A stretch of DNA of 64,000 nucleotides, from the sequence record AP019418.1; one strand, written 5' to 3'. Under the pieces are notes generated by a model. That model was not told where the DNA came from and did not search any database. It saw only the letters and a program-made list of their open reading frames with translations. Shown here in pieces: positions 1,206 to 58,182 of the stretch (positions within the stretch are counted from its first letter, which is position 1; each line of letters opens with the position of its first letter). The position numbers and the translations under genes are program-made.

Positions 1206-2318
1206 CTATTTGATGATAACCGCTTTAGAAAGAGTTTCCATACTTCCAATAACTAATTTGGATTTCTCTTCTTCAGGGTTCTCCATTGCTTCATGCAGGA
1301 GTTCACCGATGGTTTTGGGTTGAACATCATCACTGATTTCACGCGAGCATGCCGAGTCGTCGTACATATCAAACACATTCAGATCATCATCATCCAGGGG
1401 CGTGATGTCATTCCATGAATAGCTTGATTCATCCGAGGTATCATCAGACTCACCATACTGTTCACTGAGGTCACGGTCCAGTTCAGCCTCATACATCTCG
1501 CTAATTGCTTTATCGTCTTCTTCTTGCGCCTTACGACGAGAAGTCTTGTAGAACGGAAGCAGGCGTTGCAGGACTTTATGGAACTTCTTCTTGCTGATCA
1601 ACCAGCTAACAGAGTAGCGAGACAGCTTTACTTCAGCTGCTTTGATAGTCGGATCGGAGTACAGCGCCATGACTAGCTTGTCCAGTTTGTGCAGATGATC
1701 TTTAAACGAGTTTGCATAAGCAGGATGTTCCCGAAGAGTGAACATCACAAACGAACGCATGTCAGTGATATAGTACTGACTGTGATGTTTGTTGATTTCG
1801 ATGTATACCGGATCTACTGCGCGGTTATAATCGAATTCCTCTGCCCAGGTAAGGCTACGTACTTTAGTAGGACGAGGACCTTCTGCCCAACGAACAGTCG
1901 GATGTTTCTCACGGATGTTCCAACCATGATTGCGATCATACTCGGTTGACTCTTCTTTGAACCAGGTGAAATTACCTTCACCGCGCGATACAATACCACG
2001 GCACCAACTGACGTTGATTGCCTTGTTACGGCTTTCAGTAAGATCACAGGGCATGTCCAGAATAGCGACATAACTGTTATGACCATTGGCCACAACGCCG
2101 AGAACAGTAGCTTCGAATGTCTCGTAGCGCTGTCCAGGATACACACGTTCATTCTCATCCAGGTAACGAAGGGAGCAGGATTCGAAGATAGCACGAGTAC
2201 CGGCAGGGAAATGGGCACGACCGAAAGGTTGTTCGGCCTTTCTTTCTTTACGACGGCTGATAACCCATTCCAGTTTTTCTTTGGTCAGACGGGTTACGGG
2301 TTCACGATATTGTTTCAT
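1206..2318 (-). CDS. probable homolog of phiKZ014 (early ribosome-binding protein), acidic C-terminal tail
   Basis: 370 aa ORF; about tenth gene downstream of DHFR (phiKZ gp004) by synteny; basic N-terminus and D/E-rich tail; identity is inferred, not aligned. Confidence 0.55.
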   Translation of the reverse strand: MKQYREPVTRLTKEKLEWVISRRKERKAEQPFGRAHFPAGTRAIFESCSLRYLDENERVYPGQRYETFEATVLGVVANGHNSYVAILDMPCDLTESRNKAINVSWCRGIVSRGEGNFTWFKEESTEYDRNHGWNIREKHPTVRWAEGPRPTKVRSLTWAEEFDYNRAVDPVYIEINKHHSQYYITDMRSFVMFTLREHPAYANSFKDHLHKLDKLVMALYSDPTIKAAEVKLSRYSVSWLISKKKFHKVLQRLLPFYKTSRRKAQEEDDKAISEMYEAELDRDLSEQYGESDDTSDESSYSWNDITPLDDDDLNVFDMYDDSACSREISDDVQPKTIGELLHEAMENPEEEKSKLVIGSMETLSKAVIIK

Positions 2319-3018: not shown

Positions 3019-3191
3019 TTATTTATCCTCATTTACAGTGAATGCAAACATAGTACATTTCGGTTTAGCCGGATGTTGACACCATTCCTTCGAAACCTTA
3101 CCTTCGGGTTTGGTCAGTTCATAATAGAACTCACCGCAAGCAGCAGCGAGTCCCATCAGAACTGCAAGAAAACCTACACCTATTTTGGTTT

Positions 3192-3590
3192 TCACTTAGC
3201 GATGATCCGTTGTACGAAATGTTGGAGATTTGCAACCAGCCGATCGAACTCTTCCTCGGTCAGCTGATCACGATGAGATTCCAGAAGTACTTCTACCTCC
3301 GGAAGAACGTTCAGAGCGATGTCCAGCTGGATACGCGAAATGAACTCTGCGACATCCAGTTCACGATCACGACGAAGATGATTTACCAGCTTGCGATGTT
3401 GTTCACTGTTACAGTAGGTGGAGATCTTATCGATAAGAATATCAGAGATACTGCTTTCGATCTGTTCGGCTACAGCCTGACCGTCTTCCTTTACGGTAGC
3501 TTTGACCGCGAGGATGGCAGCAACGGCTGTTGCGCCAACTGCCAGTGCAATAAGACCAAGACCAAGTGCGTTTTCTTTGATGAAGTTCAT
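3192..3590 (-). CDS. hypothetical protein with N-terminal TM helix
   Basis: 132 aa; ALGLGLIALAVGATAVAAILAV. Confidence 0.75.
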   Translation of the reverse strand: MNFIKENALGLGLIALAVGATAVAAILAVKATVKEDGQAVAEQIESSISDILIDKISTYCNSEQHRKLVNHLRRDRELDVAEFISRIQLDIALNVLPEVEVLLESHRDQLTEEEFDRLVANLQHFVQRIIAK

Positions 3591-3595
3591 ATTGA

Positions 3596-3937
3596 TTATC
3601 CTTTCAAAGTTGCATCATCATTGAAGATATCAGGACCCACCGAGAGACTTCCCAGAAGATCCGGAGCAATGTAAACAGAGTTGAGGGTTTCGTATACACC
3701 GGTAACAGCATCTACGTTAACCAGGCTAGAACTGCGCATGGGTACCCATTCACCGTTACGGAAGGCTTCACCGACCAGTACACGAACATCATCTACGTCA
3801 GTGCGGTTCGGCCATAGATCCTTACCTTCTACTATTTTTACATTACGAGCATGGTAGACCAGTTTACCATTCATGCGAGCAACGATATTCGGACGGCACA
3901 TGTTGTCGATTACTTTAACTGCTACGGACTTTTCCAT
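3596..3937 (-). CDS. hypothetical protein (113 aa)
   Basis: ORF track; operon context. Confidence 0.75.
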   Translation of the reverse strand: MEKSVAVKVIDNMCRPNIVARMNGKLVYHARNVKIVEGKDLWPNRTDVDDVRVLVGEAFRNGEWVPMRSSSLVNVDAVTGVYETLNSVYIAPDLLGSLSVGPDIFNDDATLKG

Positions 3938-7088: not shown

Positions 7089-7591
7089 TTTTCCTTAGGC
7101 CAGAATTTACAAGATACTTCATTATCTTTAAATTCAATAGCCCAACTACAGCAAGTGAAATTAGTTTTAAACTTAAATGTAGACGCTAATAGGTAATTAA
7201 TTTGAGCCATTTGTAATAGCGTTAATTCACCATATACTTTCTCATCAATTAATACACCAGGTCTTTTATGTTTAATAACTAATTCATTCAACTTAATATC
7301 TTGTTCAATATAGAGGTATTCCACTTCGCCTTTTTCTAGTATGGGCATGTCCCAAAGAATCAGACTAATCTGCTGTGTGAATTCCTCAATATTAGTTGTA
7401 ATATCTAGTCCTTCATAACCTATCAATAGATTTATAAGTACTTGTAGGCTAATCAGATTAACAGGTAAGTCTTTTAAATCGTCTTCTTTAATAGTTGTTC
7501 TAAAATAAACAGTGCCATCTAAGTTTTTAACTAATAATCTATTTAATAGATGATTGACTTCTGATTTAATCTGATAATCCAGTTTGATCAT
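7085..7591 (-). CDS. hypothetical protein (168 aa)
   Basis: ORF track; overlaps DHFR start. Confidence 0.7.
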   Translation of the reverse strand: MIKLDYQIKSEVNHLLNRLLVKNLDGTVYFRTTIKEDDLKDLPVNLISLQVLINLLIGYEGLDITTNIEEFTQQISLILWDMPILEKGEVEYLYIEQDIKLNELVIKHKRPGVLIDEKVYGELTLLQMAQINYLLASTFKFKTNFTCCSWAIEFKDNEVSCKFWPKEN

Positions 7592-8150
7592 TAGCTAACT
7601 CCTTGAGTCTAGTCATGCCATTGCTAACTTCAATAATGTAACTAAAGTCAAAACTATATTTCATCATTTTGAATTCTTCTTTAAAGTTAGCGATATTTCC
7701 AGACAGAGCAATTTGTTCAAATCGACTAAAATCAGTGATAGTTTCATCAAACATTAGTTCTCTTGCGGTAATATCTGGATCATAGTTAGGATGATCAACT
7801 ACAGTACCTTCATGCTTTAAAGTACCTTGAAAATTCAAAGTCTTTTTAACATGGTCTACAGTTATTTTCCAACTAGTTGCAATATACCGAGCTTTAACTA
7901 AATTAGGAGCATACCTGTAAATACACCATTGTAATGGAGTGCCAACAGTTTGCGTATCATGCGTGGCTTTTATAACTTTAATAAAATTCTCAAGTTGATC
8001 AAATGTAACATTCCTAGTTACACCATCATTAGTGGTTATATTAAGAGATGGTCGAAGACCAGTACCAAGATCATTGGTGATGATTATATCCTCAACTAAA
8101 GCTTCATATAACTTTAGTCCTTCTTTTCTGGATCCAACATCATTACCCAT
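7566..8150 (-). CDS. hypothetical protein (194 aa)
   Basis: ORF track; overlaps both neighbours. Confidence 0.7.
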   Translation of the reverse strand: MGNDVGSRKEGLKLYEALVEDIIITNDLGTGLRPSLNITTNDGVTRNVTFDQLENFIKVIKATHDTQTVGTPLQWCIYRYAPNLVKARYIATSWKITVDHVKKTLNFQGTLKHEGTVVDHPNYDPDITARELMFDETITDFSRFEQIALSGNIANFKEEFKMMKYSFDFSYIIEVSNGMTRLKELANDQTGLSD

Positions 8151-8847: not shown

Positions 8848-11136
8848 ATGTTAAAAACTATCATTAAACTAGACGGTACTGAAGAAGCATACTCACCTGC
8901 TAAGATTAATGGTTGGGGTGAATGGGCAGCCCAACATCTTGGCGATAAGGTGGATTGGAGTAGTGTTGTGATGGATGCTGTTCAAGCTCTTGGTGATAAA
9001 ACTTCATCACAAGAACTACAATTACAACTTATTGAAGAATGTTTAAATCGTAAGACATGGTCTTATTATCTAATGGCTGGTAGACTATATGCGATTTATC
9101 TTCGTAAGAAGTTCTATGGTCTAAATGGCATCCCAACTGTTAAAGCGCTTCAAACCAGGATGCGTAAAGATGGTATCATTGTTAAATTAGATTATAGTAG
9201 TAAAGAATACGCTCAGATTGAAAAGATCATTGATCACGATCTTGACCTACTTTGTCCGCATTTTTCACTTCATCACATTCGTGGAAAGTATGCTCTACGT
9301 AATCGTAAAACTGGTCAAGAATATGAGACTGCCCAGTTTGTATATATGCGAATGGCAATGGCTCTAGCTGAAAAAGAGCCAGCTGAAACTCGCATGACCC
9401 ATGTGGAGAATTACTATAAACTACTTTCTAATAAAATTCTTAGTGCGCCAACACCTAACTACGTTAACCTAGGTACTAAGCTTCGTGGTTTTGCATCATG
9501 TTGCCTATTTGCTTCTGGTGATAATGGTGTATCACTGGCAATGGGCGATTATATTGCTAACATCATGACCCAATCATCAGCAGGCATTGGTGTTAACTTA
9601 ATGACTAGGTCAATTGGTGATCCTATCCGTAATGGCCTAATCATTCACCAAGGTAAGAAACCATACATCGATGTAATTGGTAAAGCAGTAAGGGCTAACC
9701 TACAAAATGGTCGAGGTGGTGCTGTTACGTGTTACTACAGTGCTTTCGATCCTGAAGCAGATATGATTACTCAGCTACGTAATCCACGTTCTACTGAGGA
9801 TAGGAAGAACCGTGATCTTCACTATGCATTCCTAAGTAATAAGTTCTTTGCTAAGAAAGCGGCTCAGAAAGATGGCATGATCTTTGTATTCAATCCATTT
9901 ACTGCTCCAGATCTACATGATGCTTTCTATAGTGGTGATATTGATAAGTTTATTAAGCTTTATGAAAAATATGAAGCGGATCCTAAATTTGAGAAAACTT
10001 ATGTAAATGCTCGGGATCTTCTCAAATCAATGCTAGTTGAAGCATATGAGACTGGAACCATCTATTCAGCTCAAATTGATGAACTCAATCATCATACACC
10101 ATTTAAAGAACCTATTTACAGTTCTAACCTATGCCTTGAAATCGCAGAACCCACTAAGCCTTACTATCGAATGGAAGATCTTTATTCTAGTGAGGATCAC
10201 GGGCGCGGTGAGATTGCTACTTGTTCACTGGCTGCTATTGCAGTGGATAACGTTCCTGATAAGCAAACTTATGAAATGGCGGCTTACTACGCACTTAAGA
10301 TGATTGACTATTGTATCCTTAATGCAGAGTATGCTTTCCCACACCTTGCACTAACCGCTAAGAATCGAATGAGTGCTGGTGTTGGTATCATGGGTCTAGC
10401 CACACATATGGCACGTGCTGGCCTTAAATATAGCAGCGATGCTGGTAAAGCTGAAATCCACTTCATTGCTGAACGGCATATGTACTTCCTTATCAAGGCG
10501 TCACTTAAGATTTCTAAAGAACGCGGGAATGCGCCTTGGATTCATAAGACTAAATGGCCAGAGGGATGGACTCCACGTAAGACTTATAATAAGTCAGTGG
10601 ATACTATCATTGAAGGTGGCTTTGAAGAACTTTATCCATGGGATGAGCTAGAGAAAGAAATTAAGGAGAATGGTGGTATTGCACACTCCGTACTAGCTGC
10701 ATACATGCCTGGTGAAGCATCATCTAAGGCACTAGGGTCAACTAATGGTCCATACCCGGTACGTCGCCTAATTCTTAATAAGACTGATAATGGTGCACGT
10801 GTGCTATGGGCTGCTCCATATGGAGATGATGACTCCTATGTGTATGAATCAGCTTATGATATCCCCACTAAAGATCTTATTGATTGCTATGCCATTATTC
10901 AAAAGTGGACTGATCAAACAATCAGTGCGGACCTCTACCGACGCATTGTAGGTTCTGAAAAGATCTCTTCTAATGAAATGCTAGGTAATCACTTCTACAT
11001 GGTGAAACGTGGAATGAAAACCCGGTATTATGTAAATCTAGAAACAGCAGCAGGACTTGATATTAAATCACTTGAACGTGCTGTTGAGGTAACTAATACT
11101 GAAGTTGGGTGTGCAGGCGGTTCGTGCACTCTTTAA
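8848..11136 (+). CDS. nrdA: ribonucleoside-diphosphate reductase class Ia, alpha subunit
   Basis: N-terminal ATP cone (IIKLDG...SPAKI); ASCC; SNLCLEI with radical Cys; MPGEASS; YY pair; C-terminal CAGGSC; start placed at MLKTII rather than 8797. Confidence 0.97.
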   Translation: MLKTIIKLDGTEEAYSPAKINGWGEWAAQHLGDKVDWSSVVMDAVQALGDKTSSQELQLQLIEECLNRKTWSYYLMAGRLYAIYLRKKFYGLNGIPTVKALQTRMRKDGIIVKLDYSSKEYAQIEKIIDHDLDLLCPHFSLHHIRGKYALRNRKTGQEYETAQFVYMRMAMALAEKEPAETRMTHVENYYKLLSNKILSAPTPNYVNLGTKLRGFASCCLFASGDNGVSLAMGDYIANIMTQSSAGIGVNLMTRSIGDPIRNGLIIHQGKKPYIDVIGKAVRANLQNGRGGAVTCYYSAFDPEADMITQLRNPRSTEDRKNRDLHYAFLSNKFFAKKAAQKDGMIFVFNPFTAPDLHDAFYSGDIDKFIKLYEKYEADPKFEKTYVNARDLLKSMLVEAYETGTIYSAQIDELNHHTPFKEPIYSSNLCLEIAEPTKPYYRMEDLYSSEDHGRGEIATCSLAAIAVDNVPDKQTYEMAAYYALKMIDYCILNAEYAFPHLALTAKNRMSAGVGIMGLATHMARAGLKYSSDAGKAEIHFIAERHMYFLIKASLKISKERGNAPWIHKTKWPEGWTPRKTYNKSVDTIIEGGFEELYPWDELEKEIKENGGIAHSVLAAYMPGEASSKALGSTNGPYPVRRLILNKTDNGARVLWAAPYGDDDSYVYESAYDIPTKDLIDCYAIIQKWTDQTISADLYRRIVGSEKISSNEMLGNHFYMVKRGMKTRYYVNLETAAGLDIKSLERAVEVTNTEVGCAGGSCTL

Positions 11137-12400: not shown

Positions 12401-12810
12401 TTAAGATTATCGCATTCGTAGTTTTAATGTGGTCCACTGTCCTATTTGCAGCAACTGAAGTAAAATCAACTACAGATGGTATTATTGCACATTCAGAATG
12501 TCAGCTAGTTGCTAAAGATAGTAGTGTTGTCGGCACTACTGTTGGAGGTGCGGTTGGAGCCACCGCAGGCGCTGTGTTAGGTCGAGCAATCTTTGGTAAA
12601 TCTGGAGGTTGGGTAGGTGGTTTAATCGGTGGTGCCGCAGGCGGCGCAGTCGGTAATAATGTTAGTGCTACTGAAACATTTCAATGTAAACTGATTGTTA
12701 ATACAGATGGCAAGCAGTACATGGTTCAAACAGTTACCAATGAAAAACCAAAGGTTGGTGATAAAGTCACTGTTGTTGAAATGAATGATGGTACACGAGA
12801 TATAATGTAG
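12397..12810 (+). CDS. glycine-zipper (SlyB/Pcp-like) envelope protein
   Basis: signal peptide; GTTVGGAVGATAGAVLG...GGLIGGAAGGAVGN; C-terminal beta domain (KVGDKV). Confidence 0.75.
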   Translation: MIKIIAFVVLMWSTVLFAATEVKSTTDGIIAHSECQLVAKDSSVVGTTVGGAVGATAGAVLGRAIFGKSGGWVGGLIGGAAGGAVGNNVSATETFQCKLIVNTDGKQYMVQTVTNEKPKVGDKVTVVEMNDGTRDIM

Positions 12811-12895: not shown

Positions 12896-14779
12896 ATGAA
12901 TAAAATGCTAAACTTCCTAAACCGTACGCTATATAGCGGTACTGAAAAAGTATCTTCAAAAGCTACACCAAGTCTAGAACACTTTAAAACAAATGTTGAA
13001 CAAGTAGATAAAAAGATTCTACAACCCTTTAGTACTAAATTTAAAACCATTCTAAAAGAATGTTACAGTAATGAAGAGTGGGTTGAAGAACAATCATTTA
13101 TTGAAGAACCTATTGATCTTGGTTCAGCTGCACGCGGTCTTACCGAGCGCGGTATTATGCGTGGTGATTGGGGACGCTTAGCGCATTCCACTATTAAAGA
13201 AGCAGAAGGTATGATGCGTACTTATAGTGGTCGTCTAAATGAAGATATGGAGGCATCTGAAATTAATGAAGTAATTCAAGATATGCCTTATAACTTCACA
13301 GCTGGCTCAGCTAATACTAGCCGTTTAGAAGAAGATGATTCTATTTTTGTTGAAGCAGATACAACTGTAGTTGAACCTCTGTCTAAGCAGACTCTGCCAA
13401 AAGTAGCAGAACTTACTAACCAACTAGTAGAAGTTTATAACCGAATCACTGAAGAATTTACAGAAACTGGTATTGCTAAAGTTGAACAAGTTGAACAGCC
13501 AGCAGTTCTTGTAGCACTTGGTGAGATCATTAGTAGTTTTAATAAACTAATTGATGCTTCATGTGGTGCTCTACCAGTGGAAGAAACTGTTATTGTAGAG
13601 GAGGATCCGTTACCTGCCATTGTTACTGGTCCAACTACTGAACCCATTGATGGTGAAATTCCACCTGTTGATGCTATTAATAATTCTGCGGCATTAGAAG
13701 AGTTTATTGAAGAAGTACTAAGTACTAATCCAGAATTCATTAAATACCAAAGTATGAATGATAGTAATATTGATTCATATCTAACTGGAGATGACTGGAT
13801 TATACTAAAATTTAAAGATGGTTCTTATTATTTATACAATGCCCAGAGTGCTGGTGAAACAAATATAGAAATCATGAAAGATATGGCCGAAACTGGTAGT
13901 GGTCTTAATGGTTTTATAAATCGAGTTATTCGTGGCGGGTATGTAGAGAAGTCCATCATTAATACTCCCGGTTTTATACAAGTCTCAAATGAAGGTCTTA
14001 TCGACACCATTAAGAGTATCTTCGACTCTGGCCCTGAGATCAATCTTGATAAAAAGAAGAAAGCTATTGCTACACTGAAAAGTACCTATGGTGATGCCAA
14101 ATGGGTGGCAGAAGCAAAGCTTAAAACCGGCGAAGTAAAAGTATCGAGTTACGAGACGTTCGCGTCTAATGATCCTAAGACCGCAAAAGCCAATATCACT
14201 AATGCTGTAGCTAAAGCTGATCGTCACAACCAGAAAGTTCTGGATGAGAACAGTAAGATACTAGCCCCCGTGGTTAATCTGTTCAAAGGGAATGATTGGC
14301 AAGACCCTAAGAAAGTCGCTACTCTTCTGGCTGAATGGAAACCCAATGTAAAGACAAACTTCCAAGAACCCAAATGGCCAGATAATGCTGGTGCTAAGAT
14401 TAAGTTGCTTGATGCTACCGGTATTGTGGAAGCAGCTAACGTTATCATTGACGTTCTGTCTAACAACACTAAGACTATTGCGGACACTTGGGTAGCCCAG
14501 TATCCTGACCTATCTGTCAATGGGGATATCTACAAACATAAGCTATCCACTATTAAAGATAAAGATGCTCTTGAGGATGTATATCTGCTGGCTAAAAGGG
14601 CCGATAATGCCATTCTTAACATTCATGCATCGTACGACGACGCTAAGGTTGAATCTACATATCGAGTATTTGCTATCGACATGTTGAAACTAATGCAAGC
14701 ATCTGTCAGTAGCTTCCCAAGTGGTTCAACCGTAGAGAACACCAATGAACGCAATACGGTCATTGGTATTGAAGAATAA
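12896..14779 (+). CDS. virion head protein, phiKZ gp303-like, with KTSC-like module
   Basis: 627 aa; acidic N-terminal half with S/A-x-E motifs (SLE, ALE, SNE) as cut by the phiKZ head protease; WIILKFKDGSYYLY...GSGLNGFINR KTSC-like segment; position next to nrdAB. Confidence 0.6.
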   Translation: MNKMLNFLNRTLYSGTEKVSSKATPSLEHFKTNVEQVDKKILQPFSTKFKTILKECYSNEEWVEEQSFIEEPIDLGSAARGLTERGIMRGDWGRLAHSTIKEAEGMMRTYSGRLNEDMEASEINEVIQDMPYNFTAGSANTSRLEEDDSIFVEADTTVVEPLSKQTLPKVAELTNQLVEVYNRITEEFTETGIAKVEQVEQPAVLVALGEIISSFNKLIDASCGALPVEETVIVEEDPLPAIVTGPTTEPIDGEIPPVDAINNSAALEEFIEEVLSTNPEFIKYQSMNDSNIDSYLTGDDWIILKFKDGSYYLYNAQSAGETNIEIMKDMAETGSGLNGFINRVIRGGYVEKSIINTPGFIQVSNEGLIDTIKSIFDSGPEINLDKKKKAIATLKSTYGDAKWVAEAKLKTGEVKVSSYETFASNDPKTAKANITNAVAKADRHNQKVLDENSKILAPVVNLFKGNDWQDPKKVATLLAEWKPNVKTNFQEPKWPDNAGAKIKLLDATGIVEAANVIIDVLSNNTKTIADTWVAQYPDLSVNGDIYKHKLSTIKDKDALEDVYLLAKRADNAILNIHASYDDAKVESTYRVFAIDMLKLMQASVSSFPSGSTVENTNERNTVIGIEE

Positions 14780-14801
14780 CTTACTGAGTATGTAATGATA
14801 T

Positions 14802-14945
14802 GTAGAAATGATCCCTCCCCCTCGTTTCTACATTAGTCATAATAAATCGGAGCCAGTCCCCCTTCCAACTGGCTCCCAGAGAGTAAAACTCTTTGCTGGG
14901 CATTAATGACGATATATCGCCTCCCTTCGGGGAGGCTTTATATTT
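14802..14945 (+). ncRNA. candidate structured sRNA with two C-rich loops
   Basis: starts at TATG motif; stems 14801-11/14822-32 and 14849-57/14868-76; own terminator 14919-14936; no ORF. Confidence 0.7.
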
Positions 14946-23594: not shown

Positions 23595-24125
23595 TTAGAC
23601 GGTGTATAAACCTTCAGTATTACATGTTGTTATGATGTTGTAAAGACGATGCCAATAGCGATCATACGTATTTTTACGTTTGTAGCTATTGGTGCGGATG
23701 ACTAGATTGGCGACCCAGTGATTCTGATCAATGGTCTCATGTAGATGCCCGAAATAAGCCCCCAGTTCAATTTCGAATGGGATCTTACACTCACGCCCCT
23801 TACACATTGCTTCACGTAATAAACGCATTGCAGAATTCTCTGCATTAGTGTCTTTAAATAAAAGACTAATGTATCCAGGGCTACCACCAGTTTCTTCATC
23901 AACATGGCCTGAACAACAATAAATAGTTGCAATATTGGTGAATTGGTTAAACCATTTAATCAATGGTCTACATGCTTCATCAATAAGATCTTCATATTCA
24001 GGTTTATACATTACTTTAACAGTATCATCTGCACGTTGTTTCACATGATGAAAATATTGCTCCCAATTTACATTAGTGTAATATAGCATATCCATATTAG
24101 AATTACTCATACAAATCAACCCCAT
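23595..24125 (-). CDS. hypothetical protein with T-x-x-CC-S-G-H motif (possible TYW3-like fold)
   Basis: 176 aa; RPLIKWFNQFTNIATIYCCSGH. Confidence 0.45.
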   Translation of the reverse strand: MGLICMSNSNMDMLYYTNVNWEQYFHHVKQRADDTVKVMYKPEYEDLIDEACRPLIKWFNQFTNIATIYCCSGHVDEETGGSPGYISLLFKDTNAENSAMRLLREAMCKGRECKIPFEIELGAYFGHLHETIDQNHWVANLVIRTNSYKRKNTYDRYWHRLYNIITTCNTEGLYTV

Positions 24126-24847
24126 ATGTTATTGGCATATTCGCGGTCATTGAAAATGCGGGTAAGATCCATCCGCTTTTGAATGCGCGCTAGTATCCAT
24201 TTTAGTTGTTTAGTTGATAGTTCTTGATTTTGCTTGTACTCACCTGTAGCATGGATGTAATAATCAAATTTACGACTTACAGTAGTAGTATGTGCACATG
24301 CAATAGCAAATGCTTCAAGTGCAGTTAGTTTGGTTGATCCATTATCATTACAATTAGGGATAAACTCAAGTACACTATTAACTGCATCTACACCACTACC
24401 CAAATGAGCCCAATCTTTCTTGGTGATGTTGATACCCATGTCTTTAAGAATAACTGTATATATGTCACCATTCTCCATAGTGAACATCATAGAAGTATTA
24501 CCATTAAACAACCTGCGTTCTATGACTGGCAAGATATTTACTTCAACTTTAAACCAATCAGCTAAATCAACACCTGCGGTAAGGGCATTCAATAGATCAT
24601 AAACATTATCTATAGTTCCAGCAAAAGCCATAGTTTTAACACGTTTGCCTTGCCAAGTAACAGTCGGATGAAAAATTATCTTGTGGCAATCATTGTAATA
24701 TACATCTACACCTTCAGCTTTAGCAGTTAGATCAATATAACCGTTATCTAATACTGGAAGTCGCCCAATGCTATCAGTTGCATTATTCCGCTCAATTAAT
24801 AGGCAGTCTGCAATCATGACTTTACCATCATTTACGATATATGTCAT
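24116..24847 (-). CDS. Ntn-hydrolase / proteasome-beta (HslV-like) fold protein
   Basis: MTYIVNDGKVMIAD, MAFAGT, HLGSG, TALEAFAIAC match the T1 / AD / G / GSG / A.eA..iA pattern. Confidence 0.55.
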   Translation of the reverse strand: MTYIVNDGKVMIADCLLIERNNATDSIGRLPVLDNGYIDLTAKAEGVDVYYNDCHKIIFHPTVTWQGKRVKTMAFAGTIDNVYDLLNALTAGVDLADWFKVEVNILPVIERRLFNGNTSMMFTMENGDIYTVILKDMGINITKKDWAHLGSGVDAVNSVLEFIPNCNDNGSTKLTALEAFAIACAHTTTVSRKFDYYIHATGEYKQNQELSTKQLKWILARIQKRMDLTRIFNDREYANNIWG

Positions 24848-24884
24848 TTTCACCCCTTATAATAAAATAAATAGGCTTAAGCGA

Positions 24885-25005
24885 AATAAAGCCCTCCCCG
24901 AAGGGAGGGCATTATCAATAGGTGGGATCTCGGCGGCACCTTCATTTGCGGACGGGAACGCTGAAGGGAGATAGTCCGGGAGATCCCGATTTGGGTATTC
25001 TTTAC
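24885..25005 (-). ncRNA. candidate GC-rich structured sRNA with UUCCCGUC apical loop
   Basis: TATG at 25008-25005; nested stems GGGATCTC/GAGATCCC, CCTTCA/TGAAGG, GCG/CGC; terminator 24891-24910. Confidence 0.65.
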
Positions 25006-25013
25006 ATATGGTA

Positions 25014-25394
25014 TTACTGCAAGTATTTGTTCCCCGCAGTATAATCACCATTGATCCAATTTTTGATTACAACACTGATCCCTTCATTTTCTTTAACGGT
25101 AACCCCCAACTCAAGATCGATTGATTGATAAGCTACAGCCGCCAGTGTTAACCGAAGATAAACGGATCCATCTTTTTCGATATCGTAGGATACTACGAAC
25201 CCGTCTTGTAGATTTTGTAGCTGGAATGTATTAGCATGTTGTGGGTGGAGACGATCCATATTGTACTCGACGACATCTAGTAGATATTGCCGAGCATCAG
25301 CAGCATTATCAAATCCGAGATCGCACAGACCGATCGGATAGCGAGCTTGCGTGCATGTAACTTTCATAGATACTACACGATGTTGTTTGCACAT
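25014..25394 (-). CDS. hypothetical protein (about 117-126 aa)
   Basis: ORF track; start uncertain. Confidence 0.7.
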   Translation of the reverse strand: MCKQHRVVSMKVTCTQARYPIGLCDLGFDNAADARQYLLDVVEYNMDRLHPQHANTFQLQNLQDGFVVSYDIEKDGSVYLRLTLAAVAYQSIDLELGVTVKENEGISVVIKNWINGDYTAGNKYLQ

Positions 25395-25535
25395 TATATT
25401 TTCCTCTTAGATGTCAAAAACCCTCCCCGATCAGGGGAGGGTATCTCATTGGTACTTCTTCAGCAAAACTGAAACTAAGATAAAAGAGCAATCGTAAAGG
25501 AACTACATAGAATAGTGTATTTCTTTTACTATTTT

Positions 25536-36290: not shown

Positions 36291-36626
36291 CTAGTTAAGC
36301 ATTAGATATTTAGGTTCAGTAGTGGCTCGGATCTTGGCAATAAGAGCTTTCTGATCGCTAACCTTACTAATGGGATATTCTAATAAACGTAAATCCATAT
36401 CCCGATGTACTAAACCTAACATCGCCTTATTTTGATGACTATTATTACGTAATGCAGCGATATGTTTATCAACTTCATTACTAACAGTCTTTGAAAGTCC
36501 TACCAAATACTTCCCAGTTGCAATGTGTTCAATAACGTAAACACCTGCTCCAACTATTTCGCTTCTTTTCCCACGACCGTGCGAAGTACTTGACCAACTA
36601 TAACACTTATCATCAACTATAAACAT
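36291..36626 (-). CDS. stand-alone GIY-YIG-like domain protein, probably degenerate
   Basis: GVYVIEHIATGKYLVG...H...L.NNSHQN...terminal LN. Confidence 0.65.
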   Translation of the reverse strand: MFIVDDKCYSWSSTSHGRGKRSEIVGAGVYVIEHIATGKYLVGLSKTVSNEVDKHIAALRNNSHQNKAMLGLVHRDMDLRLLEYPISKVSDQKALIAKIRATTEPKYLMLN

Positions 36627-38222: not shown

Positions 38223-38525
38223 TTATGGCAATAGTTCACTGTATTTAGAATAGTTATCAATCACCCATTGGTTAGACATATACTTAGGAGTATCACCTAG
38301 TAGTTTAGTATAGGTTAGAAGATAGATTATTTGTGCTTTATTAAAATCTAATCCAGCCTCTTCCCAACCAGCGCGGTACTGCTCCACCTTATCACCATGT
38401 GCGCTAATGAGCCCAGTACAGGACTCAATATACCGATCTTCACCAGCAAATACAGTGCTAATGAATTTATCAGTATTAGCCAACATATACGATGCCGAGT
38501 CAATCACTTTATTTTTCATATTCAT
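38223..38525 (-). CDS. hypothetical protein (100 aa)
   Basis: ORF track. Confidence 0.75.
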   Translation of the reverse strand: MNMKNKVIDSASYMLANTDKFISTVFAGEDRYIESCTGLISAHGDKVEQYRAGWEEAGLDFNKAQIIYLLTYTKLLGDTPKYMSNQWVIDNYSKYSELLP

Positions 38526-48643: not shown

Positions 48644-48907
48644 TTAACTATTGGTTTCACCACGAGTATTGAATTCTAAATCCAATACAACTTTAGTAAA
48701 TTCTTCCAGTGCACCACCCTCGTAGATGAGTGGGTCACTGTCACCCCGGTACATGCTACCTACCGGTACTTGACCACGAAACACCATCAGCATATCGTTT
48801 TTTACTATGACATGATGTTCATCCCCGACAGCAATGTCTTGGATGTGTCTCCAGCGTTCACGCAGTAAGCTGCAAGCGCACCATACGGATTTCAAACGTT
48901 CAGTCAT
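48644..48907 (-). CDS. hypothetical protein (87 aa)
   Basis: GAGGG RBS; follows early promoter 48941-48948. Confidence 0.7.
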   Translation of the reverse strand: MTERLKSVWCACSLLRERWRHIQDIAVGDEHHVIVKNDMLMVFRGQVPVGSMYRGDSDPLIYEGGALEEFTKVVLDLEFNTRGETNS

Positions 48908-56021: not shown

Positions 56022-57111
56022 CTCTTATGTTCACCCAGGGTCGTTAATCCTGAGCCGTTTACTTAAATGACTTTATAACCAGAATACTTTGGATTCTTGC
56101 TGTTAATTCGGTATGTTATTGTACCCTGTGATACTCCGAGAGCCTTAGCTGCATCGGCCTGGGATAAATAAACAACACCGTCCACTTCAAGTTTGTTTGA
56201 GTTAGTTGGCTTTATACTGCGTTTGTTATCCGCCAACTTTTTTCTGGTTTCTTCGGAATGTGTTTTACCGTAGAATGGATTACGTTCGCCTGTTCTCTGA
56301 GAAGCTATCTCCGACATCCTGGCTCTTGTCTCATCACTAGCTTTAATGCCAAGACGGTAAGTGTTACCCGTGTGTAACTCGGATAGAGCTACCTTAACTT
56401 CTTCTGTGTGAGTACGACCATACATCCCATTCTGCTCACCTGGTCGACCATACTTTTCCTGACGAGCCTCGGCTCCAATCTCATCAAGTCTGATACGTAT
56501 TGTATCACTCCGCTTCTCGATGATTTGTTCTTTGAGGTTATGCCTGGTTAAGTTATCACCACCCTTGGAGTGTCTACCAATATTAAGAAGGTTACCTTCT
56601 TCTTCATGCTTGGTTATCCACATCTGTTCGAGTGTAAATGCTGATTCCCGACTTTCACAACGATAGTACTTTAACGAGAATCTTTCACCGTTATCGTATT
56701 CTTGTTGTAATGGGTAGTTATGGTGCTTGGAATTACTAAGGTCTCTGAAATGTCGTTGAACGCGCTTAACTAAATCTCGCGCACTTCCGACATATACCTT
56801 TCCTTCTTTGGTGAATAGGCAATACACATAAGCTACGTCATTAATAACACCCTCCTTATCTGGCGGAGTCATTAAGTAAACCGCTGCATGTCTCCATGCA
56901 GGACAGACTATATCACGATCTCTTAAAAAGAGACCCCTACCTTTTCGGACCACTTGGTCCTACTCTACTCCCTTCCTCTTCTCAGAGTGGTTTCGATAGT
57001 CGTTAGGCATTTATGACCGTAGTCAATTTAGCACGGGATTGTCTCATAGAGAGTTTCCCCGTTTAGATAGGTTATTCGACTAGGATTGCTCCTAGAAGGC
57101 GCTAGTATTTA
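56022..57111 (-). mobile_element. group I intron in thyA
   Basis: 5' splice site after U with P1 GCGU/UA paired to UAGCGC; GACUA...AUAUAGUC P7; AAACGGGGAAAC and GACAAUCCCGUG core motifs; terminal G; splicing restores YQR-SxD. Confidence 0.93.
56063..56872 (-). CDS. intron-encoded GIY-YIG homing endonuclease (I-TevI/I-BmoI-like, NUMOD3 repeats)
   Basis: YVY...VYVGS...R...H; LEQ.WI; NLLN; two GxxNxxYGxTHxEE NUMOD3 repeats; C-terminal HTH; start placed at MTPPD. Confidence 0.9.
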   Translation of the reverse strand: MTPPDKEGVINDVAYVYCLFTKEGKVYVGSARDLVKRVQRHFRDLSNSKHHNYPLQQEYDNGERFSLKYYRCESRESAFTLEQMWITKHEEEGNLLNIGRHSKGGDNLTRHNLKEQIIEKRSDTIRIRLDEIGAEARQEKYGRPGEQNGMYGRTHTEEVKVALSELHTGNTYRLGIKASDETRARMSEIASQRTGERNPFYGKTHSEETRKKLADNKRSIKPTNSNKLEVDGVVYLSQADAAKALGVSQGTITYRINSKNPKYSGYKVI

Positions 57112-58182
57112 ACGCTGGTAGAGCTGGCAGCTCAATGCACGTTTAGGAACACCAAGTTTATCCCACAGTGCGTGATCAGTTTCCGGTTGCGCACCTTCAA
57201 GGAAAATACGTTGAGCTTCAGTGTCGTTAAGTTTGACCCAGTCATACCGTTCTTCTAGCGTCAGTTCACGAGTCCAGAACTGAAAGAAGCTATGACATGG
57301 TGGGAGCGCCTGTTCATCAACGAGTTGCGGTGACCACGCACAAACGATGATTCGACGGGAATCAGGGTTTGTCTTAAGTTGATCAATCACGTCTTGAATT
57401 TGATCAATACGACGTGTTACAACACAGCGGTCATTCTCCATACACGTACCAGGAATATCAACTACGAAGTTAAAGCCACGCTTCTCATAATCCACCCACT
57501 CATATTTAGGGATTACACGAGTGTCTTCAAGATCACGCCAAGTCTTACCGTAAACGGCACCTAGATCGCCCCCGATGAGTTTCAGAGGCTTAACTCCAAA
57601 TAGCAATTTATATAGTCGTTTACCATATTCATATTTAATTAGTTCTGGTGTTACACTCTCATCGAAATCTATAGTAGATACTGCCAGCCATTGGCTAGTG
57701 TTAACACCAATTACATGCGTAGCATCAATATTAATGGTTGGATATTGATTCCAAAAGCTAGCTATCTCATCATCACTTAAAGAAGCTTCAAACTCATCTC
57801 TAGTTTGAATGATTACTTCATCATCTAAACAATGAAAATAAAGGGCAAATGGGCCACCAACTTTCTTTAGAATAGCTGAGTCAAGCTCTTCTTGATTTAA
57901 CTCACGATACATCGCGGTATTTGGTTTAACCCATTCATTCCAAATGCGTACGCCATTTTCAATTAAATAATCTACACGAGTATCACCAGAAAGCATCCAG
58001 AACAATTCATGGATAACAGATGGAAGATGAATTTTCTTAGTAGTTACTACGGGTAGAACGTTGTTACGTAAACTATAACGTTCTTGTTGACCAAACATGC
58101 TCTGAGTACCAGTACCAGTACGGTCACCTTTATGCACACCGTGTTCTTTAACTAAACGAATTGAATTAAGATATTGTTCCAT
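57112..58182 (-). CDS. thyA: thymidylate synthase, exon 1, with large insertions
   Basis: DRTGTG; TTKK; ELFWMLSG; IWNEW; GDLGAVYG; SRRII; ALPPCH; LYQR followed by TAA inside the intron. Confidence 0.95.

Follow-up and report, generated by a model that had tools for sequence, protein, structure and literature searches.

A spacer of about 160 nt between two genes of a giant Pseudomonas phage stands out from its surroundings by its high G+C content, and raises the question of whether it encodes a functional RNA and, if so, whether that RNA works on its own or serves the gene behind it. In the phiKZ-like phages the DNA is transcribed within a protein shell, by the phages' own polymerases. Many short RNAs have been catalogued in these phages, none of them with a known function, and the RNA considered here was previously a single unvalidated line in a supplementary table. 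An initial reading of the bare sequence (the sequence-only reading) had proposed a GC-rich, structured, non-coding RNA with its own start and terminator, belonging to an undescribed set of late phage sRNAs.

Here we follow up that proposal. The molecule itself is already known, as an unvalidated candidate of the middle class (Putzeys et al., 2024). What is new is strong comparative evidence that it represents a family of functional, structured RNAs in phiKZ-like jumbo phages, for which relatives have not been described. A conserved and covarying fold, its presence in several genera and its multi-domain expansion in one lineage place this RNA among the best-supported jumbo-phage ncRNA candidates for a first functional study, and the alignment and structure form a ready seed for Rfam.

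Genomic setting

The stretch of DNA analysed (the window; 64,000 nucleotides of record AP019418.1) comes from a phiKZ-type Pseudomonas phage. Over the 801 bases round the element, identity is 100% to Pseudomonas phage PA02 and 99.8% to phiKZ (AF399011, 262776–263576), where these bases span PHIKZ288 and PHIKZ289; the minus strand of the window corresponds to the plus strand of phiKZ. The element occupies the spacer from the PHIKZ288 stop codon (window 25014) to the PHIKZ289 start (24847). A full-text literature search for PHIKZ288 or PHIKZ289 returned no phiKZ paper naming either gene. PHIKZ289 has a weak match to the HslV peptidase family (phrog_1040, E = 5e-5), and its N-terminal Met-Thr is invariant across relatives, which fits an N-terminal-nucleophile hydrolase. 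PHIKZ290 (23595–24110, minus) matches the tRNA methyltransferase family TYW3, but below threshold (18.5 bits; cutoff 27 bits). One intergenic space further upstream of the element (25416–25505, minus) lies the published candidate 5′UTR_PHIKZ288, an 89-nt RNA running from P129 to T118, with a TATG start and a CCCUCCCC/GGGGAGGG terminator; Table S7 of Putzeys et al., 2024 includes it without a validation entry.

Transcript boundaries and promoter class

The ends of phiKZ transcripts have been mapped by ONT-cappable-seq (Putzeys et al., 2024; microLife, PMC10914365; bioRxiv 10.1101/2023.10.13.562163; Tables S3–S7), and the published coordinates were carried to the window by sequence alignment. 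Promoter P130 has its transcription start site (TSS) at 263172 (window 25004), the −50 to +1 sequence ending in ...ACCATATGT, and is classed by the authors as a ‘middle promoter’ (Table S3). Terminator T119 is intrinsic (−18.6 kcal/mol), with its 3′ end at 263292 (window 24884). The unit from P130 to T119, TU198, is 120 nt long and contains no gene; Table S7 gives it as a ‘5′UTR-derived’ ncRNA candidate of PHIKZ289 with an RNAfold energy of −46.6 kcal/mol and an empty validation column (Putzeys et al., 2024). The start that had been placed at 25005 therefore exists and lies 1 nt away, and ‘undescribed’ no longer applies to an RNA that is already TU198 (P130–T119) in that table. Earlier dRNA-seq of early phiKZ infection predicted one unconfirmed sRNA, and earlier Grad-seq of phiKZ found two; all of these differ from TU198.

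The promoter carries a AAATACTT box at a fixed spacing 5′ of TATG, as do the middle promoters P132 and P133, whose experimental-validation entry in Table S3 reads ‘Wicke et al. (2021)’ (PMC10914365). An A(A/G)TAC(T) box lies about 12 nt 5′ of TAT(G/A) in all main-type homologs, the spacing of P132 and P133, and the middle-type box is conserved in 9 homologs and in Viktualia. This conservation supports the published middle class and contradicts the label ‘late’ given in the sequence-only reading. The locus thus shows what marks a phiKZ middle-promoter transcript, namely the box, the fixed spacing, the TATG and a TSS just after it, and, from the published mapping and a terminator scan, what marks a stand-alone sRNA gene, its own TSS and a Rho-independent terminator that together give a discrete 120-nt RNA.

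Transcription does not always end at T119. At most 5′UTR terminators of this kind the short RNA is predominant and the full-length mRNA minor, and reads initiated at P130 reach at most 264292, which covers PHIKZ289, while reads from the upstream promoters P128 and P129 stop by 263293 (Table S5; PMC10914365). The next TSS past T119 is P131 at 264056, and none is mapped between T119 and PHIKZ289 (PMC10914365), so that read-through of T119 is the sole mapped source of PHIKZ289 mRNA. Since P128 and P129 transcripts run through the element to end at T119, it is also the 3′ UTR of PHIKZ288 transcripts.

Composition and fold

G+C content over 24921–24990 is 61.4%, as compared with 35.9% for the whole window, which bears out the GC-richness first noticed there; only 0.05% of 70-nt windows are as G+C-rich, the remainder of them including tRNA genes. 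Further short non-tRNA islands of at least 58% G+C lie at 3458–3563, 12517–12613, 13115–13191, 38353–38422 and 48706–48778 (window 36% G+C).

The minimum-free-energy fold of the minus strand is a set of nested stems (−46.3 kcal/mol, z = −4.4, with none of 200 shuffles as good); the z-score of the plus strand is only −2.6. Inspection of the sequence, folding and the terminator scan recovered each of the minus-strand features that had been described, from the TATG and the nested stems to the capped loop and the UUCG terminator (Table 1). The RNA begins with the T at 25004 and ends on the last U of UUUAUUU at 24884. The terminator hairpin, GCCCUCCC-UUCG-GGGAGGGC, occupies 24910–24891 and its U-rich run 24890–24884, and its stem covaries between phages.

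The terminators of seven of the loci compared (L003, L028, L029, L031, L035, L037 and L039) and phiKZ T120 consist of a hairpin followed by UUUAUGCCG(U) rather than a plain U-run, and this terminator string is common to many phiKZ-like phages. When the Psa21 element was compared by BLAST with 201phi2-1, Noxifer and Phabio, the terminator part alone matched.

Table 1. Features of the locus in window coordinates, and Viktualia-type units in the coordinates of their own sequences
Feature	Position	Strand	Remarks
PHIKZ288, upstream gene	25014..25394	−	P128/P129 transcripts cross the element and end at T119 (TU195, TU197, Table S5)
Promoter P130, middle-type	25005..25028	−	AAATACTTGCAG box 25028–25017; TATG 25008–25005
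TATG	25008–25005	−	followed by TAAAG
Transcript, ~120 nt (TU198, 5′UTR_PHIKZ289 ncRNA candidate)	24884..25004	−	published TSS/TTS, Tables S3–S5 and S7
Leader	25004–24988	−	
Conserved core (short leader, P1, P2, P3a, P3b, 3′ tail)	24917..24998	−	covariance model R1, 72.8 bits
P1, outer stem GGGAUCUC/GAGAUCCC	24987–24980 with 24931–24924	−	
P2	24978–24976 with 24936–24934	−	5 bp in most relatives
J2/3, asymmetric internal loop ACUAUCUC	24968..24975	−	faces UG bulge 24938–24937; AUCUC invariant 13/13
P3a, CCUUCA/UGAAGG	24967–24962 with 24944–24939	−	
P3b, inner stem GCG/CGC	24961–24959 with 24950–24948	−	
Apical loop UUCCCGUC	24951..24958	−	CCCGUC invariant in 13/13 members
Single-stranded 3′ tail ACCUAUU	24917..24923	−	invariant in 9/9 main-type; GCCUA in Viktualia type
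Terminator T119, 8-bp GC stem, UUCG loop, UUUAUUU	24884..24910	−	also ends PHIKZ287/288 transcripts
PHIKZ289, gene 3′ of terminator	24116..24847	−	reached solely by read-through; no TSS mapped from T119 to gene start
Viktualia-type unit, L030 (Viktualia)	1536–2015		
Viktualia-type unit, L148	~7230–7710		
Viktualia-type unit, L128	~9800–10290	−	
Viktualia-type unit, L143	~3170–3650		

A conserved and covarying RNA family

Comparative sequence analysis shows conservation of the fold across at least 13 related giant phages, whose RNAs form a structured family without a match in Rfam. Besides phiKZ the members are T2P, RVTF4, D6, Psa21, Viktualia and seven uncultivated jumbo-phage contigs. In T2P the flanks are about 82% identical to phiKZ (81.9% over 801 nt), while the 88-nt core carries 3 substitutions, all at unpaired positions, and the terminator stem is altered by compensating substitutions. 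RVTF4, D6 and Psa21 were reached through synteny with PHIKZ289 (gp289 identity to phiKZ 74%, 39% and 39%); a homologous element is present in each, with helix sequences that all differ and loops that are identical. Between phiKZ and Psa21 or D6 gp289 is only about 39% identical, yet long stretches of the RNA are invariant. A core far less diverged than its flanks, with stretches that are invariant where gp289 has diverged, indicates that selection acts on the RNA itself. Four additional distinct copies were retrieved with a motif pattern; the uncultivated jumbo-phage contigs that carry them are 50 to 315 kb long.

A covariance model (R1; 84 positions, 21 pairs) was built from nine sequences. 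In the window it gives a single match of 72.8 bits, with no second copy in the 64 kb even at E ≤ 10. It also detects sequences outside its training set, scoring 30.7 bits for Viktualia, which was found by synteny, and 31.7, 29.6 and 20.6 bits for three jumbo contigs. The helices of these three contigs are independent evidence because the pre-filter used unpaired motifs only.

In the alignment of 13 sequences, which was fitted to the model and whose members represent perhaps six or seven lineages, 96.9% of the cells are standard pairs and 15 of the 21 pairs show changes on both sides; analyses that were not fitted to the model agree. The covariation score is 0.56 as against 0.19 ± 0.02 for shuffles, none of 500 reaching it, and a control in which the 3′ partners were slid by 1–3 columns gave 32–48% pairing. 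When 5 sequences were aligned by plain MAFFT and folded with RNAalifold, the stems of the sequence-only reading came back together with the short P2, with compensatory changes in 16 of 32 pairs, and folding of single sequences gave the same architecture in 8 of 9. Four motifs are invariant in all 13 members, namely AUCUC, CCCGUC, the GCC after P3a and the CCUA in the tail, and all are G-poor and either unpaired or at a helix end. The published ends, the fold and the covariation together uphold the proposal of a structured non-coding RNA with its own start and terminator, and also its expectation that pairing would be conserved in relatives.

The search with a model built from relatives, which the sequence-only reading had suggested, yielded homologs in jumbo phages. 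At gathering thresholds Rfam 15 finds tRNAs and one group I intron in the window (RF00028, 69.4 bits, at 56884–57121 on the minus strand) and leaves the element unmatched. A permissive search of 24800–25100 (E ≤ 10) gave at best 18.5 bits against a 55-bit cutoff, from the terminator only, and a known Rfam family is rejected on both counts. ARAGORN found no tRNA or tmRNA at the element, either in the window or in ten relative loci. Homologs in bacteria or unrelated viruses were also sought, the motif-pattern scans covering viral, metagenome and genome collections; the matches of three motif patterns outside jumbo phages all failed the reporting thresholds of the covariance model, and a pattern match in 201phi2-1 failed the model as well.

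Changing neighbours and a larger version of the RNA

The genes on either side of the RNA are not the same from phage to phage. The upstream gene belongs to one of three unrelated families: PHIKZ288 in the phiKZ group, a protein of about 100 aa in six phages, and a membrane protein in D6. The first gene past the terminator belongs to four unrelated families across the members, being gp289 in the phiKZ group, a membrane protein of 56–77 aa in seven phages (one of them without gp289), and members of two further unrelated families in the Viktualia-like phages. In a wider comparison of synteny, gp289 and PHIKZ291-like proteins were confined to the same few phages. The RNA is the most conserved feature of the locus, more so than any neighbouring protein, and is not tied to one neighbour. 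Its spacing also varies across members, with the core lying about 11 to about 105 nt from the TSS and about 6 to about 260 nt from the terminator.

The longest of these distances are found in Viktualia and three contigs, where about 105 nt separate the core from a middle-type promoter and about 260 nt separate it from the following terminator. Between this promoter and terminator extends a conserved, non-coding unit of about 470 nt, with the core as one of its domains. Several blocks of the unit are invariant, the lengths of its indels are not multiples of three, compensatory change is seen at 28 predicted pairs, and Rfam gives no match to it. Two small CDS annotated over it in Viktualia (L030 1586–1867 and 1947–2036) are probably spurious. 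Searches with nhmmer for its other domains in the phiKZ window and the main-type loci found none, the matches in the phiKZ window being the core and generic terminators. The phiKZ RNA therefore looks like a minimal version of the Viktualia-type unit.

How might the RNA act?

We favour the view that the locus is a self-contained gene for a structured ncRNA of about 120 nt, an independent trans-acting RNA of the middle phase with candidate patches for binding a partner, and put this at a little short of an even chance. A conserved middle-type phage promoter starts transcription at window 25004, the RNA folds into a rod of four covarying helices, and the intrinsic terminator frees a defined 120-nt unit (TU198) at 24884, being leaky enough for some polymerases to pass into PHIKZ289. 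The helices may serve as a scaffold that displays three invariant, single-stranded patches, pyrimidine-rich and G-poor: the AUCUC of the internal loop, the CCCGUC of the apical loop and the CCUA of the tail. With these patches as its working surface the RNA would bind, in trans, a partner that could be a protein or else a purine-rich (Shine-Dalgarno-like) RNA, and it would be an independent middle-phase regulator or a component of an RNP, and not a switch for the gene behind it. Three observations argue for a function in trans: the neighbouring genes change, the distances to promoter and terminator vary, and no conserved pairing was seen to compete with the terminator. Within the 64-kb window, however, no duplex between the RNA and a translation-initiation region was better than those of shuffled seeds. 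One candidate target, the Shine-Dalgarno site of PHIKZ272, has a 9-nt complement to the apical loop; it did no better than shuffles, is absent in Psa21 and D6, and was rejected. PHIKZ272 (36291–36626, minus) is a mobile GIY-YIG homing endonuclease whose Shine-Dalgarno region lies in a small hairpin, and its T2P copy is 100% identical, as against about 82% for the two genomes in the region compared, which suggests recent mobility.

The layout of promoter, RNA, terminator and gene, and the passage of T119 by P130 transcripts only, count against a role in trans and fit a leader that acts in cis. In such a 5′ leader, or attenuator, the binding of an effector (for instance a metabolite, a protein of the phage or its RNA polymerase) would set the passage of T119, and the 120-nt RNA would be a terminated by-product. 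We regard this as a serious rival, though the less probable of the two. The order of elements is the expected one, with a promoter, a structured domain, an intrinsic terminator and a gene without a TSS of its own, and Putzeys et al., 2024 group TU198 among RNAs arising from premature termination in the 5′UTR (PMC10914365). Reads from P130 extend to 264292 while those from P128 and P129 end at 263293, although the absence of read-through from the latter two may merely reflect limits of read length. Covarying stems (15/21 pairs; 96.9% of cells) combined with invariant junction and loop bases are the pattern of riboswitch aptamers and of protein-binding leaders, and the segment from the terminator to the Shine-Dalgarno site (CGUCUYAAGGAG) is alike in RVTF4 and the Viktualia type. 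Against this, inspection of nine aligned homologs revealed no mutually exclusive antiterminator, and a linker parts the core from the terminator, a distance that grows to about 260 nt in Viktualia-like phages. Pairing of P3a with a terminator arm was checked by eye across homologs, and the similarities were inconsistent from phage to phage; neither a leader hairpin competing with P1 nor a pairing of the tail with GGUG, checked in the same way, was consistently conserved. Nor is the downstream gene of one consistent family, and no riboswitch or leader in Rfam 15 matches even at E ≤ 10.

A broader idea embraces the Viktualia type. The core could represent, in minimal form, a new class of functional RNA among the Pseudomonas jumbo phages that form a nucleus, either as a sensor through which an effector controls termination by the non-canonical phage RNA polymerase, or as the conserved module of a larger RNP or ribozyme-like RNA, of which a version of about 470 nt would survive in Viktualia-like phages. 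We consider this unlikely, if still worth bearing in mind.

The remaining explanations fare worse. The RNA might mimic a surface of host RNA (for instance an anti-Shine-Dalgarno or decoding-site strand, or a tRNA minihelix) and thereby sequester some host factor or defence nuclease. J2/3 (GGAACAUCUCC) resembles what we take to be the 3′ end of E. coli 16S rRNA (GGAUCACCUCC), the CCCGUC(AC..CAU) loop resembles what is presumably the 5′ strand of 16S helix 44, and in most members P1 and P2 amount to 12 bp followed by ACC. The rRNA likenesses are short, however, and drawn from E. coli rather than Pseudomonas rRNA; phiKZ itself has 8 + 3 bp and not 7 + 5; its 3′ end is an ACCU inside a longer transcript and not CCA; and the negative ARAGORN result at the element, in the window and in ten relative loci speaks against a tRNA-like shape, so that we find such a decoy improbable. 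Less probable still is a purely passive role, in which the structure stabilises the PHIKZ288 mRNA from its 3′ UTR or extends the terminator, without sequence-specific function. The P128 and P129 transcripts, which end at T119, do carry the element in their 3′ UTR, but the element has a dedicated conserved promoter, its unpaired bases are invariant across genera while the stems vary, and the upstream gene is not conserved. A coding role, through the 64-aa ORF (24857–25051, minus), which overlaps the end of PHIKZ288, or through a short leader peptide, can practically be dismissed, in line with the sequence-only reading that had seen no credible ORF: the near-identical T2P alone has a similar ORF, and RVTF4, D6 and Psa21 lack it, substitutions occur as base-pair compensations, the internal AUG lies within helix P3a without a Shine-Dalgarno sequence and is absent from other members, and the flanking ORFs tested have no Pfam match.

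Comparison with known systems

Base-pairing sRNAs with C-rich loops, such as those of the RsaE type, target Shine-Dalgarno regions. The phage RNA resembles them in having G-poor, C-rich unpaired motifs on a stable scaffold and a Rho-independent terminator; it differs in that the 64-kb window yielded no complementary target that is conserved. The put RNAs of phage HK022 mediate processive antitermination in cis. The resemblance to put is that the nascent transcript folds between a phage promoter and a terminator, from where it could act over varying distances. In contrast to put, the short terminated RNA and not read-through predominates at most such 5′UTR terminators (PMC10914365), and transcripts that contain the element and come from the upstream promoters are not seen to pass T119. 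With transcription-attenuating riboswitches and protein-binding leaders the element shares the layout, the covarying stems and the invariant junction and loop bases, whereas the lack of an overlapping antiterminator, the variable spacing to the terminator, the inconsistent gene family and the absence of a match in Rfam set it apart.

Within the nucleus-forming Pseudomonas jumbo phages, the sRNA005 of 201phi2-1 and the sRNAgp182 of phiKZ are likewise short RNAs derived from a 5′UTR, with conservation across genera reported. They sit upstream of a tail gene and are tied to that one conserved gene (PMC11512511), and they differ from the present element in locus and sequence. The sequence-only reading had also joined the element in one family with another at about 14802, which is the northern-validated 141-nt 5′UTR_PHIKZ302 RNA (274148–274007, phiKZ minus strand; PMC10914365). 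In the window this RNA is read from the plus strand, at about 14800–14941 (within 14798–14945); it starts after TATG, has two C-rich apical loops and a generic terminator, and folds very strongly (z-score −6.9); Table S7 of the preprint prints the opposite strand for it. The likeness in TATG-type promoter, strong fold, C-rich loops and terminator is real. The C-rich loops are, however, a loose theme, and TATG starts and terminators of this type occur generically in phiKZ. The two RNAs lie on opposite strands and show no homology, R1 being blank at the second site at E ≤ 10; with one match of R1 in the window, paralogy is ruled out and the proposed family falls. The closest comparison is with TU198, which is the same molecule: where Putzeys et al., 2024 only list the RNA, the present analysis adds its covariation, the distribution of the family and the larger version of the Viktualia type.
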